A DNA stretch of 64,000 bases, from the sequence record MW825358.1. The stretch is one strand, 5' to 3'. Shown here in pieces: positions 11,420 through 63,056 of this stretch. The notes beneath the pieces were generated by a model that saw only the letters and a list, made by a program, of their open reading frames with translations, was not told the origin of the DNA and did no database searches. The stretch's first letter is position 1, and every line of letters starts with the position of its first letter. The translations under genes were made by a program, and so were the position numbers.

Positions 11420-13459
11420 ATGTCTCCCAACGAGCTTCCTTTCAATGTGGAGATTTTCCAGCCCACCCAAGCTGTCCTGGACATGCTCAAGCCAGTGTCC
11501 AGCGTGGACTACTACGAGAACACCAAGGGCGATCTCCATGAGGAGGGCCTGTTCTCGATTAGCATCTTCGGACGCATGGGTGATGAAGCGCGCGATAAGC
11601 GTTTCTCCTACATTGACATCAAGACCCAGATTTTCCATCCCATCATTTACAATCGTTTGATCCGTTTGAAGAAGCTCTACCAGGGCATCCTCAATGGTGA
11701 TCAATATGCCGTATGGGACGAGGCGCGCCGTGACTTCTTTCCTGCCAATGCGCTGGAAGGACAAACCGGCTTTGCCTTTTTCTGCGAGCACTGGAAAAAG
11801 ATCCAGTTCAACCGCAACACCTCTGACGTGCGCGAGATGCGTGTCAAGGTCATTGAGAAGTACCGCGATCGGGCCATGACCAGTAAGATCTTGGTGATCC
11901 CGGCGGGTATGCGTGATATTGAGGTGGACGAGAATGGTCGCACCAATGTCAATGAGATCAACGCGCTGTATCGAAAGTTGATTTCAATCTCGCGAGTGTT
12001 GCCAGATAATGCCGAGCCCAATGACCCTAACCAGAATCTGGCCCGGCGGTTATTGCAAGCCTGTTTCAATGATATCTACGATCTGATTGAAACCATGCTC
12101 TCTGGCAAGGAAGGCTTCTTCCAATCTAAGTGGTCCTCACGTAACGTGGTGAACTCCACCCGTAATGTGATCACCGCCATGGATACGTCTGTGGCCAAAC
12201 TCGGTGCGCGCAATGCCCCGCGCTTTACCGATACGATCGTAGGTCTTTGGCAGCTGTCCAAGGCTGTCTTGCCTGTAACGATCCACCACTTGAAAAACGG
12301 CTACCTGTCTGAAGTCTTTGCCTACGGCAATCGTACCGCACGCCTGGTCGATCCGACCACGCTCAAAGCTGAGATGGTCGATGTCTCCCCTGATGCCTTT
12401 GATCGGTGGAACACCGTAGAGGGGTTAGAGCGGGTGGTGTCCAGTTACAAAGAGTTCTCTTTGCGCAGTCGTCCTGTCACTGTCGATGAGCGCTATTTGG
12501 CGCTGTTGTATGCCCCCAAGGGCGCGGCGGTGTTCAAGCTCTTTTCTGACATCGATGAGTTGCCAGAAGGGGCTGACCGTAAAGACGTTCGCCCGGTTAA
12601 CTTGATGGAACTGCTGTACCTGTCTGGGTACAAGATCTGGAATGACCAGGTCGGCACGGTCACCCGCTATCCGGTGACCAACGTGGGCAGTTGCTATCCC
12701 ACCACGGTCTATGTCAAGACCACCGTGGTCGGTGAGATGCGTCGTGAGTTAGGTGATGACTGGCAGCCCCTGCCAGGCGATGAACATCTGGCCCCAGAGT
12801 TCCCCACCTATCAGCCCTTGGCTTATCAAGATAGTCTTGTCATCCCCAGCACCCGTCTTGCGGGTCTGGGAGCCGATAACCTTCTGTGCACAGCAGAAGG
12901 TAAGTCCTGTGCGCTGGCGACGGTGCGCTTGCATTTCCCTTAATTGCTGGGAACCCTTGTTAAACATACAGGCTACAACGTGGGACGAAAGTCCGAGCGT
13001 GAATGCTTGAAAACTGTATGGTAGAGGCAATCAGCAGCTGATCCCCTTTGTGATTCCGCTTTTTAGCGTTGATAGCATGGGGCGAGTTCAACGACTATCC
13101 CGTAGCTGGGAGTACACCGGAATGGCCGGTGGAAATAGGGAAACTTCTCGAATCTGCGTCTGGGCAAAACGCTGCGAGAAGAAGATATAGTCTGGCCTGC
13201 AGGGAGACCTGCAGCAGTGGAGCTGTAGTTGCGGCAGTCACCACGCACCTGAGGGGAAACGACCACAGGTGGAACACATGCGTTTGACGGAGACACGGCC
13301 AGCTTTGTGGCCATCTATACCGATGCCAAGAATGACATCATCAACTACCTGAATAGCAAGCAAGCCTACGTTGATCCCATCGGCGGTATTCGTACCAGTG
13401 CCGGGGTGGATACAGTCAACTTGTTCCTGCGCAGCTTTACCGGTAACCCCGACAGCTGA
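11420..13459 (+). CDS. Virion RNAP beta'-like subunit (phiKZ gp180-like), spliced join(11420..12877,13283..13459), 544 aa
   Basis: Exon 1 ends RLAGLGAD; exon 2 starts FDGDTASFVAI; joining restores the catalytic ADFDGD motif. Also LSGKEG, TRYP motifs of beta'. Confidence 0.92.
12878..13282 (+). mobile_element. Group I self-splicing intron (405 nt, no homing endonuclease ORF)
   Basis: 5' exon ends in U, intron ends in G; P AATTGCTGGGAA (12942), Q AATCAGCAGC (13029), R GTTCAACGACTA (13086), S AAGATATAGTC (13182); removal restores frame and the DFDGD motif. Confidence 0.93.
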
Positions 13460-13477: not shown

Positions 13478-14818
13478 ATGCGCCCTAATTTACAAGACGA
13501 AGTCGAATCCAGCGCTGCGCTGTTGGATTCTCTGGAAAGCTACAACGAAACACTCCTGCAGGATCTGCAGGAGCAAGTGTCCATGGAGTCTCACCCACCC
13601 AAGATCGAGTATCTGCGTCAACGTGAGTTGAAAGATATCGAACAGCGTTTGGGTATGGAAGGCCTGGACATGCAGGGCGTCAAGGACTTGTTCTCAGCCA
13701 TTGGCCGAGGAGCCAATGCCTTAGGTCATGGCTTTATGAAGTTCTTAGATGCGATCCACCGTTTGGTCGATACCACCCATCTGGTGCGTGCGCGCCAACT
13801 GAAGGAGTCCTTCAAAGCCATCTCTAAGGAAGAGGCGGCTATTCAGAAGGGCCGCATGGAACGCCCCAAGATTGCCGCAGCCTTGGCGGTGGGCGGGGAA
13901 GTGTCAGGTTTATTGGGTCAAGCCAAAGGTCTGGTGGATTTCTCTCGTCGCACCACCACCAATGTCTTGCCCGAGCTGGCTTCGGTCAGCCGGCGCGTGG
14001 CGGCCCAGATCAATGCAAAGCGTTGGATGGGTAACGATGCGTTCAATGCAGAAGTGATAGAGCTGGCCAATATCTTGGGTACAGGCAAGCTGCCTATGGA
14101 GCGTTACCCAGACAAGGACTTTCAAAAGCTCTGGCCTGGTAACCGCACTATCTTCCGCACGATCAAGCCCAAGCGTCCACGCAAGGAACCTAACACCAAC
14201 TCTGTAACCGCGCGTAAGGTCGTGCAGGCCGTGAGCACTACTTCGGTGGGCATCAACGTCAAGTCTGATGTGGTCAAAGGTAAGGCAGATTCGATTCTGC
14301 CCGTACTGACGCCCGCCGAGGCCATCCAGCTCATCGAAGCGGCCGAGGCCTTGTTGCATGAGACTATTCGTGTCAAGGACGTGGCCAAGGGATATGCCAA
14401 GGATAAGGTTCCCTCGATGATCTCAATGATGATCTCTGGGTTCTTCCATCAAGCCGGGCGTGTCTATGATGACATGTTCACCGCCCAAGACGATGGCTAC
14501 CATGTGGTTGATATGTCAGGCGGTAAAGCCACCCGACATGAGGTGGGTACACGCAATACCCTTGGTAGCGTTGGTGCTTTGGCCGATGGCGTGCGCAAGG
14601 GCGCCAAGGTGGGACTGTTGTCTTTGGAAGAAGACACCGTTTCCATGGAAGATGACAAGGATGAACTGCGGGTGCAACTGGCATCGTGGGTCAGCCGTTA
14701 TCTGAAGCTGTCTTTGATTGATCACCACAAGACCAGCCGTGCTTTGCTTTTGCTCTTGGTGGCTGTTGCCCGCAGCTATCTGGATTATGCAGAAGAGAGC
14801 TTGGACTACTACCGTTGA
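13478..14818 (+). CDS. Probable internal head (ejection) protein with cleavable propeptide (446 aa)
   Basis: Acidic N-terminus with VSMES and LGMEG matching the S/A/G-x-E prohead-protease site, followed by an amphipathic helix; lies in the late virion-RNAP operon. Confidence 0.65.
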   Translation: MRPNLQDEVESSAALLDSLESYNETLLQDLQEQVSMESHPPKIEYLRQRELKDIEQRLGMEGLDMQGVKDLFSAIGRGANALGHGFMKFLDAIHRLVDTTHLVRARQLKESFKAISKEEAAIQKGRMERPKIAAALAVGGEVSGLLGQAKGLVDFSRRTTTNVLPELASVSRRVAAQINAKRWMGNDAFNAEVIELANILGTGKLPMERYPDKDFQKLWPGNRTIFRTIKPKRPRKEPNTNSVTARKVVQAVSTTSVGINVKSDVVKGKADSILPVLTPAEAIQLIEAAEALLHETIRVKDVAKGYAKDKVPSMISMMISGFFHQAGRVYDDMFTAQDDGYHVVDMSGGKATRHEVGTRNTLGSVGALADGVRKGAKVGLLSLEEDTVSMEDDKDELRVQLASWVSRYLKLSLIDHHKTSRALLLLLVAVARSYLDYAEESLDYYR

Positions 14819-61184: not shown

Positions 61185-63056
61185 TTGGATCACAAACGCC
61201 AGTATGATGGTATTGCCATTCGACTGGTGGATCTGGATGAAGTCTTCAACACCGCAGCCACCTTACCGGTGATTGTCAACGCCTTCAATACCGAAACGGT
61301 CGATGATCGTCAGGTGCTGGATTCGTTGATCTACACCCACTATGACGGCGACTCGCTGAACATGGTGCCCACCTGTGAATGCCAGCGCATGCGTGGTGCT
61401 GGTAAGATCGGTCTGGTGTGTCCGCGTTGTGGTGGTACGGTCACGCCCGCCAGCGAACGACCGCTTGAATCACTGCTGTGGTTGGCCCCGCCTGAAGGCG
61501 TGGAAACCTTCATCAATCCCCAAGCCTGGACGATGTTGTCCAAGGCCCTTACCCACGGTGGTATTAATGGACTGGCCTGGTTGTGCGATCCGCACATGCC
61601 AGTGGGTCCTGAACCCCATCGTGAAATCCGTCGCCTGATTGATCAAGGATTTGATCGGGGCATCAACAACTTCTACCAGAACTTTGACACGATCATCGAT
61701 CAGCTGTTTAATATCGGTGTGATTGCAGGGTCTAACCGTCAGCAAAAGGCGGATCTGTACGAGTTCATCAAGGCCAATCGCAAACGCATCTTCTGCAAGC
61801 ACCTGCCAGTGCCTTCGCGGATGGGCTTTGTGACCGAACGCTCGATCACCGGCACCTTTGCCGATTCGACCATGAAGCTGGCCATCGATGCGATCCGTAC
61901 GATCTCCGATACCGTCCACTCGCTGCGTCCGCTGGATCTGGGACGTCGTCAGTCGCGCTCGGTCAAGGCCAATGACCTGATGGCGCAATACCACCAGGAG
62001 TTCATGAGCAGCACGCTCACCTCCAAGCGTGGCTGGTTGCGCAAACACGTGTTCGGCTCCCCGTTGTACTTTACCTTCCGGGCAGTGATTTCCTCGCTGT
62101 CTGATGAGCACGAGTATGATGAGTTGCACCTGCCGTGGGGTGTGGCAGTGTCCACCTATGCACTGCACCTGACCTCGAAGATGTATCGGATGATTAATGA
62201 AGAAACCGGTCGTCCGTTCACACCCAATGAGGTGCTCAAGCATCTGCGTGAGCATACCTTGCGGTATAGCCCCTTGTTGGACCGGCTCTTTGATGAGCTG
62301 ATTGCCGAATGTCCATACAAGGGATTGCCAGTGCTGTTCAACCGTAATCCTTCACTGGACCGCGGTTCGATTCAGCAGTTCTTCGTGACCAAGATCATCA
62401 AAGACCCGGAGATCAACGCCATCTCTATGTCTGTGTTGACGCTTAAGGCTCTTTAACGGGTCCTTCCGACAGTAATGTCGGTCGATCATCTCTCTAATTG
62501 CTGGGACCTCTGACGCCAACTATCTTCGGATAGGCGGACACACTACTAAAGCGGAGTGGGTAACCACAAACGTCCAGTTTAAATAACGTGTGTCTTTTTG
62601 CAGACAATCAGCAGCCAAGCTTCCTAACGGCATTACAAGTAACGTCGCGGTCACATGAAACCGCAGCCTAACAATACGGGTGACGTGAAGTAATTGATGC
62701 GTGGAAGAAGGTTCATCGACTAGCCGAAAGGCGTAGGGTGCAAGCGCATCCGAAATGGGAGACTTCCGCGACGGCGGAAGAAGATATAGTCAGTACCTAG
62801 ATGTGAATCTAGGCGGGAGTCAGCGCTCCGGGTCCGTGTAGCGAACGGATTGGACAAATAGCCAAATGCCGATTTCGACGGCGATGCGCTCAACGGCATG
62901 CCTTTGTTGGACAACCGTCACGCTTACGCCTTCAGTGCACTCGCCCCGCACCAAGGTGTGTTGGATCTGGACCGTCCGCGGGCCATGTCCAAGAACCAGA
63001 TCATGCCGCCTCCGGTGGCTTCCACGATCGCCAACTGGCTTCACCACGGCAAGTAA
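61185..63056 (+). CDS. Non-virion RNAP beta'-like subunit (phiKZ gp55-like), spliced join(61185..62450,62862..63056), ~486 aa; start uncertain
   Basis: Zn finger CECQ...CPRC, LRKHVFGS, FNRNPSL; exon 1 ends LTLKA, exon 2 starts PNADFDGD. Confidence 0.92.
62451..62861 (+). mobile_element. Group I self-splicing intron (411 nt, no homing endonuclease ORF)
   Basis: 5' exon ends in U, intron ends in G; P AATTGCTGGGAC (62496), Q AATCAGCAGC (62606), R GTTCATCGACTA (62711), S AAGATATAGTC (62781). Confidence 0.93.

Follow-up and report, generated by a model that had tools for sequence, protein, structure and literature searches.

The segment 12878-13282 of the analysed 64,000-nucleotide stretch of DNA (the window) is very probably a complete group I intron. 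It lacks an endonuclease and interrupts the gene for the N-terminal part of the β' subunit of a virion RNA polymerase (vRNAP) of the phiKZ gp180 type. The coordinates of the window are those of Xanthomonas phage vB_XciM_LucasX (MW825358.1), with which positions 11420-13459 are 100% identical. All features of this gene and its intron given below lie on the plus strand.

The interrupted gene

The first exon of the β' gene (11420-12877) comprises 486 codons and ends with ...LAGLGAD. The second exon (13283-13459) comprises 58 codons and the stop, begins with FDGDTASF and is in frame with the first. An earlier first-pass annotation, made from the sequence alone, had noted a truncated 507-aa β' open reading frame ending in non-homologous residues and had proposed that removal of 12878-13282 restores the ADFDGD motif and adds 58 aa. 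Both statements were borne out. The truncated frame occupies 11420-12943, and its last 21 residues are non-homologous and intron-encoded (the read-through tail of the unspliced product is ...GADNLLCTAEGK), while the joined product reads ...LAGLGAD|FDGDTASF... and has a length of 544 aa. This product can be aligned from the first to the last residue with four intronless homologues, namely those of Xoo-sp14 (550 aa), the phiKZ-type phage KTN4 (550 aa), Erwinia phage pEa_SNUABM_37 (538 aa) and Burkholderia phage FLC9 (542 aa), with the junction lying within GAD|FDGD. Exon 1 shares 42-54% identity with the intronless homologues, KTN4_220 included. It matches the profile phrog_2986 ("RNA polymerase beta subunit", E = 1.2e-183) at positions 4-484 of 539, and exon 2 matches the same profile at positions 485-538 of 539. 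The two matches are directly contiguous, therefore nothing is lost or doubled at the joint.

The orthologue KTN4_220 is annotated as a virion-associated β/β' protein. The β' gene is flanked by genes for a gp181-like protein of 2459 aa (in KTN4 annotated as a structural peptidoglycan hydrolase) and for a gp178-like β subunit of 1463 aa, in the order found in phiKZ-type phages. On the basis of this synteny and of general knowledge of phiKZ, we take the split gene to be of the type of phiKZ gp180, a vRNAP subunit.

In GenBank the two halves are treated as separate genes and the intron is not annotated. LUCX_4 (11420-12943, "similar to putative RNA polymerase beta subunit") runs 66 nt into the intron. 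LUCX_5 (13307-13459, hypothetical) starts at an internal GTG at 13307, 8 codons past the junction, and for this reason is devoid of FDGD. The paper describing LucasX does not mention introns and reports neither transcriptomics nor mass spectrometry (PMC9009655). A literature search retrieved no paper describing this LucasX intron, and the papers naming OMKO1 together with introns were unrelated to it. Among sequencing runs, a single DNA run, probably from the source sample, was listed for this sequence, and no RNA run. The present analysis corrects the public records in that LUCX_4 and LUCX_5 are most probably one gene, encoding the catalytic subunit of the packaged polymerase. The equivalent annotated pairs in the phages RTH11 and OMKO1 are likewise one gene.

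Boundaries and fold of the intron

The intron has a length of 405 nt, contains no substantial reading frame and adopts an IA-type architecture (P1-P10 with P5a-c, P7.1, P7.2, P9.1 and P9.2). The group I model of Rfam (RF00028, gathering score 50 bits) matches positions 12876-13214 over its full length (1-253) with 56.8 bits and E = 9.4e-12 in the 64-kb window. The score is only modestly above the threshold because the peripheral insertions are large. P, Q, R and S, which the first-pass annotation had recognised, all align to the model with high posterior probability, and the U ahead of the insert and its closing G were found as T12877 and G13282.

The 5' splice site is defined by P1 (12875-12906), in which G12875, A12876 and U12877 of the exon are paired with C12906, U12905 and G12904, respectively, so that the wobble pair U12877·G12904 is located at the splice site. 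This pairing of GAU (12875-12877) with the guide GUC (12904-12906), previously put forward as a possible one, is drawn by the minimum free energy (MFE) fold unprompted and is kept in all five same-site introns described below. The hairpin suggested to precede the guide also appears in the MFE fold, as a P1 extension of 9 bp (12879-12887/12893-12901) that is enclosed by P1 and stacked on it. The guide residues A12902-A12903 may pair with U13283-U13284 of the second exon to form a P10 of 2 bp (UU/AA). The P2 hairpin (12909-12928, 8 bp) is capped by a GNRA loop, which is GCGA in LucasX and GUGA in its relatives.

The 5' part of the catalytic core, up to the closing strand of P3, spans positions 12934-13143 and is delineated by the Rfam alignment and by compensatory changes. 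It consists of P3 (12934-12939/13138-13143), P4 (12945-12950/13031-13036), P5 (12955-12958/13024-13027), P5a (12965-12971/13014-13020), P5b-c with a GAAA loop at 12987-12990, P6 (13043-13046/13079-13082) and the 5' strand of P7 (13093-13097). P7.1 (13098-13111) and P7.2 (13115-13131) are inserted between the 5' strand of P7 and the 3' strand of P3. The 3' part of the intron, from P8 to the terminal G (13144-13282), contains P8 (13144-13150/13175-13181), J8/7 with the 3' strand of P7 (13182-13192), P9.0 (13195-13196/13280-13281), P9 with a GAGA loop (13197-13214), P9.1 (13217-13244), P9.2 (13246-13271) and the terminal G13282. Every helix listed, those of the P3/P7 pseudoknot included, is fully paired in the LucasX intron, and the z-score of its MFE, calculated for the single sequence, is -2.58. 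The presence of both P7.1 and P7.2 would assign the intron to subgroup IA (IA2-like), a label given by anatomy only.

Introns at the same and shifted sites in other phages

Introns free of reading frames occupy the same GAU|UUY site in the Xanthomonas phage RTH11 (L002:7453-7857, 405 nt), in a relative from IMG/VR (L124:3968-4368, 401 nt), in the Pseudomonas phage OMKO1 (L007:2316-2796, 481 nt) and in a further IMG/VR phage (L074:370-757, 388 nt). The Pseudomonas phage fMGyn-Pae01 gives the same blastn match as OMKO1. The ORF-less same-site introns of RTH11, OMKO1, fMGyn-Pae01 and the IMG/VR contigs are homologous ribozymes which are unannotated in the records examined. As compared with the LucasX intron, that of OMKO1 has ~110 extra nt in the loop of P1 and is free of in-register extensions of the P7.2 and P9.2 types.

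The gene is present in roughly 314 phage records. Four more introns came from a survey of its 80 top-ranking relatives in IMG/VR, of which only these 4 are interrupted in the codons concerned. The intron of L184 (L184:4465-5873, 1409 nt) is located at the same site (GAU|UUC) and carries a reading frame of 330 aa with a match to HNH_3 (25.6 bits, cut-off 24.8). That of L198 (L198:4462-5596, 1135 nt) is also at the same site and carries a reading frame of 208 aa with no family match. The other two, both without a reading frame, are shifted: by +1 nt (GAC U|UC) in L199 (L199:4457-4854, 398 nt) and, by the rule of a preceding U and a terminal G, by +2 nt in L165 (L165:4461-4910, 450 nt). All eight introns in these codons score above the Rfam threshold, with 63-91 bits.

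In L199 the Asp codon is GAC, splicing is placed after the U that follows it, and GGUC replaces GUC as the guide. This change of the guide agrees with the predicted P1 pairing; L199 can be regarded as a case in which P1 has followed a sliding splice site.

The phage of L184 is LucasX-like (69% protein identity). The 3' half of its intron is 70% identical to the OMKO1 intron, and the reading frames of L184 and L198 both sit in the region of the P1 loop. In the contig L074 (IMGVR_UViG_3300042566_001512, 209 kb) the segment 370-1183 contains two group I introns of 388 and 414 nt (83.6 and 88.8 bits), which flank a micro-exon of 12 nt, TTCGACGGCGAT, coding exactly for FDGD. The same contig has 7 Rfam group I matches above the threshold and 3 below it.

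Covariation and conservation of the fold

Covariation was assessed by a script counting changes helix by helix and, independently, by RNAalifold on the introns of LucasX, RTH11 and L124; both give the same picture. The count yields 22 pairs with double compensatory changes among these three Xanthomonas-type introns, and RNAalifold yields 126 pairs, 25 of them changed on both sides. In the three close relatives the compensated pairs are distributed over the P1 extension (4), P2 (5), P5 (2), P5a (4-5), P7.1 (1-4), P7.2 (3), P9 (1) and P9.2 (2). Comparison of the five same-site introns adds covariation in P6 (2 pairs), P7 (1 pair) and P9.0. The latter occurs in three compensating forms (GC/GC, GU/AC and AC/GU), which fixes the 3' splice site. 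P3, P4 and P9.1 are without covariation evidence since they are invariant among the close relatives. The apparent non-pairs of P8 in RTH11 and L124 are a product of 1-nt alignment indels. In all three pairwise comparisons the introns are more similar to each other than the exons are (80.8-93.0% vs 67.8-79.0% identity).

These data bear on the idea that the insert is a dead relic, with β' being a pseudogene or with LUCX_4 and LUCX_5 being made separately and assembled. Such an arrangement would be in line with the two CDS listed in GenBank and with the natural division of jumbo-phage RNAP subunits into several polypeptides (PMC7598289). It is nevertheless highly improbable. FDGD is present in neither of the annotated pieces, so that an essential enzyme encoded in a single copy would be left without any polypeptide bearing its catalytic triad. 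Moreover, the ribozyme is constrained, with at least 22 compensated pairs and an identity exceeding that of the exons, and the same arrangement is retained in three diverged genomes.

Absence of an endonuclease

The first-pass annotation had found no endonuclease motif in the longest internal reading frame of the intron. In agreement with this, the longest sense frame (72 aa, 13069-13287) has no match in Pfam or PHROGs, nor has an antisense frame of 83 aa (13063-13314). Thus, a search of the internal frames against Pfam and PHROGs reveals no homing endonuclease encoded in the LucasX intron.

The neighbouring LUCX_6 was considered as a free-standing homing endonuclease acting in trans and was rejected. 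Its sole match is a sub-threshold one to phiKZ_IP, the internal head proteins of phiKZ (18.9 bits, cut-off 27), and it has no match in PHROGs. LUCX_6 (13478-14818, 446 aa) is situated between the β' and β genes of the vRNAP in LucasX, RTH11 and L184; in Xoo-sp14, KTN4, pEa37 and FLC9 these two genes abut.

Proposed splicing and its consequence

The boundaries and the fold suggest the following course of splicing, which the intron itself would catalyse. In the pre-mRNA the exon triplet GAU would pair with the guide GUC, so that the U12877·G12904 wobble marks the point of cleavage. An exogenous guanosine, bound at P7, would then attack after U12877. G13282, docked via P9.0 and the 2-bp P10, would next allow the exons to be ligated (...GCCGAU/UUUGAC...). 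The predicted junction of the spliced RNA is GGAGCCGAU/UUUGACGGAGAC, and the predicted tryptic peptide across the exon junction is LAGLGADFDGDTASFVAIYTDAK. Only the spliced mRNA would encode the 544-aa subunit with its complete Mg-binding ADFDGD loop. Without splicing, translation would stop at UAA 12941-12943 and the product would keep one of the three catalytic Asp residues, and for this reason splicing would be needed for the packaged polymerase.

LucasX encodes chimallin (PF25677, 197.8 bits; phrog_4795), hence its transcription is presumably separated from the ribosomes. This would distinguish it from phage T4, the introns of which are assisted by translation. It is conceivable that the segment, although a genuine group I intron, does not act autonomously, with efficient splicing depending on an RNA chaperone or a maturase-like factor, encoded by the phage or the host, or on particular conditions. 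Such help might be needed since the exon part of P1 is limited to 3 bp and P10 to 2 bp. In addition, in phages with a chimallin shell transcription takes place apart from the ribosomes that help T4 introns to fold, and splicing of T4 introns is stated to depend on translation (Sandegren and Sjoberg 2007, as cited in PMC10914365). On the other hand, the core and the stabilising peripheral helices are intact and covarying (the GNRA loops of P2 and P9, the GAAA loop of P5c, P7.1 and P7.2), and many phage introns of the IA type self-splice in vitro without any factors (PMC11878797). We consider this dependence unlikely.

A second intron in the non-virion polymerase

LucasX contains another ORF-less group I intron at 62451-62861 (Rfam, 54.7 bits). 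Its flanking exons, 61185-62450 and 62862-63056, are annotated as LUCX_60 and LUCX_61 and form the N-terminal β' gene of the non-virion RNAP. Removal of this intron joins ...LTLKA to PNADFDGD..., and the exons match phrog_2987 at positions 2-414 and 415-476. LUCX_60 and LUCX_61 are thus also one gene, belonging to the non-virion enzyme. The paralogous β' genes were compared by their PHROG profiles, BLASTP between the two being uninformative. The second intron is inserted 12 nt before the position that corresponds to the site of the first one. The two introns precede the natural end of the respective N-terminal β' genes by 58 and 64 codons. It has been proposed in a review that split RNAP genes originate from intron mobility (PMC7598289).

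The second intron is absent from RTH11 and from the L124 genome. The possibility that the two LucasX introns are duplicates of each other was rejected: they have only universal core motifs of 12-15 nt in common.

If both introns act as proposed, in each of the LucasX polymerases the mRNA of the catalytic subunit would need splicing before an active enzyme could be formed, with transcription being separated from translation.

Mobility of the intron family

The gp180-type genes of OMKO1, which has the intron, and of KTN4, which does not, differ by 71 mismatches. Of the 71, 62 fall in the 384 nt that immediately precede the insertion site (~16% divergence), while the remaining 1083 nt upstream contain 3 (0.3%). 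Judging from the sequences, this pattern would represent a one-sided co-conversion tract. Together with the HNH-bearing intron of L184, the tract indicates homing into this site. In the LucasX clade the intron is present in all three close genomes, and the nearest intronless phage has only 54% protein identity. As far as the sequences tell, the signs of spread would belong to the intron family; for LucasX itself they point to retention only. The number of Rfam group I matches per genome is 2 in LucasX (both in β' genes), 1 in RTH11 and 1 in the L124 genome. OMKO1 has five group I introns in total.

Why an intron without an endonuclease persists may be considered separately from its identity. 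It is possible, albeit doubtful, that it is not only a tolerated parasite but is kept as a shield, destroying the target site for the homing endonucleases of competing phages. This proposal is compatible with the group I intron explanation and concerns only the persistence of the intron. The LucasX-like IMG/VR phage L184 has an HNH_3-encoding intron at the same GAU|UUC site, the OMKO1 tract suggests that homing into the site occurs, and the HNH endonuclease of the PhiPA3 intron nicks the vRNAP gene of intronless phiKZ and lowers the fitness of that phage (PMC11620839). However, cutting of an intronless LucasX-type site by an endonuclease is as yet conjectural, and the intron may equally well persist because it is hard to delete precisely from a codon that is essential to the active site.

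One may speculate that the NADFDGD codons of both jumbo-phage RNAPs are a contested homing site across Chimalliviridae-type phages, where ORF-less introns are retained as immunity by occupancy against co-infecting HNH introns; we put this forward tentatively. If it is true, the introns must fold and splice in the ribosome-free phage nucleus and might be adapted to splice independently of translation. Introns recur at the AD|FDGD codons, in ORF-less, HNH-bearing and 1-2-nt-shifted forms and, in one case, as two introns around the 12-nt FDGD micro-exon. The site lends itself to comparative studies of the homing cycle and of the ideas, raised by PhiPA3 gp210, that an intron may serve as a weapon or as a shield.

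Comparison with known systems

That group I introns occupy active-site codons in essential genes of phages is textbook knowledge, and the LucasX intron is a further example of this well-known kind of element, not a new kind. It shares the placement of P7.1 and P7.2 with the IA2 introns of phages (T4 td, nrdB and sunY; Twort; the DNA polymerase introns of the SPO1/Bastille type), as well as the insertion into a codon for the active site of an essential enzyme, the 5' U·G pair and the terminal G. In contrast to these classical introns, its host gene encodes β' of a multisubunit RNAP, and its transcription is presumably shielded from ribosomes. The lack of a reading frame is common among phage introns: 13 of 45 in Bastillevirinae have no nuclease loop (PMC11878797).

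A closely related characterised case is PhiPA3 gp210, an HNH-bearing intron in the chimallivirus vRNAP β gene gp211/209 (Birkholz et al. 2024, PMC11620839). Both this intron and that of LucasX are group I introns of nucleus-forming jumbo phages that interrupt a virion RNAP gene beside conserved Asp codons of the catalytic region. The two differ in that the PhiPA3 intron resides in the β subunit gene and has an HNH homing endonuclease as a weapon, whereas that of LucasX resides in β' and is ORF-less.

The predicted endonuclease "introns" gp56, gp72 and gp179 of phiKZ showed no splicing in full-length transcriptomics (PMC10914365). Like the LucasX intron, they are mobile-element insertions associated with RNAP genes. 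The LucasX intron differs from them in having a complete covarying ribozyme fold.

Two minor observations concern more distant sequences. The 33 nt at 13085-13117 (the R element, P7 and the start of P7.1) match the Brochothrix phages A9, ADU4 and BtpYZU04 at 100%; the matching sequence lies in a ribonucleotide-reductase region, and P7.1 differs even between LucasX and RTH11. In Serratia phage Totoro and its relatives (L008:2469-2763) another β' gene is interrupted after ...NCDFDG, one codon short of the end of DFDGD, by a related intron core that carries an HNH gene.
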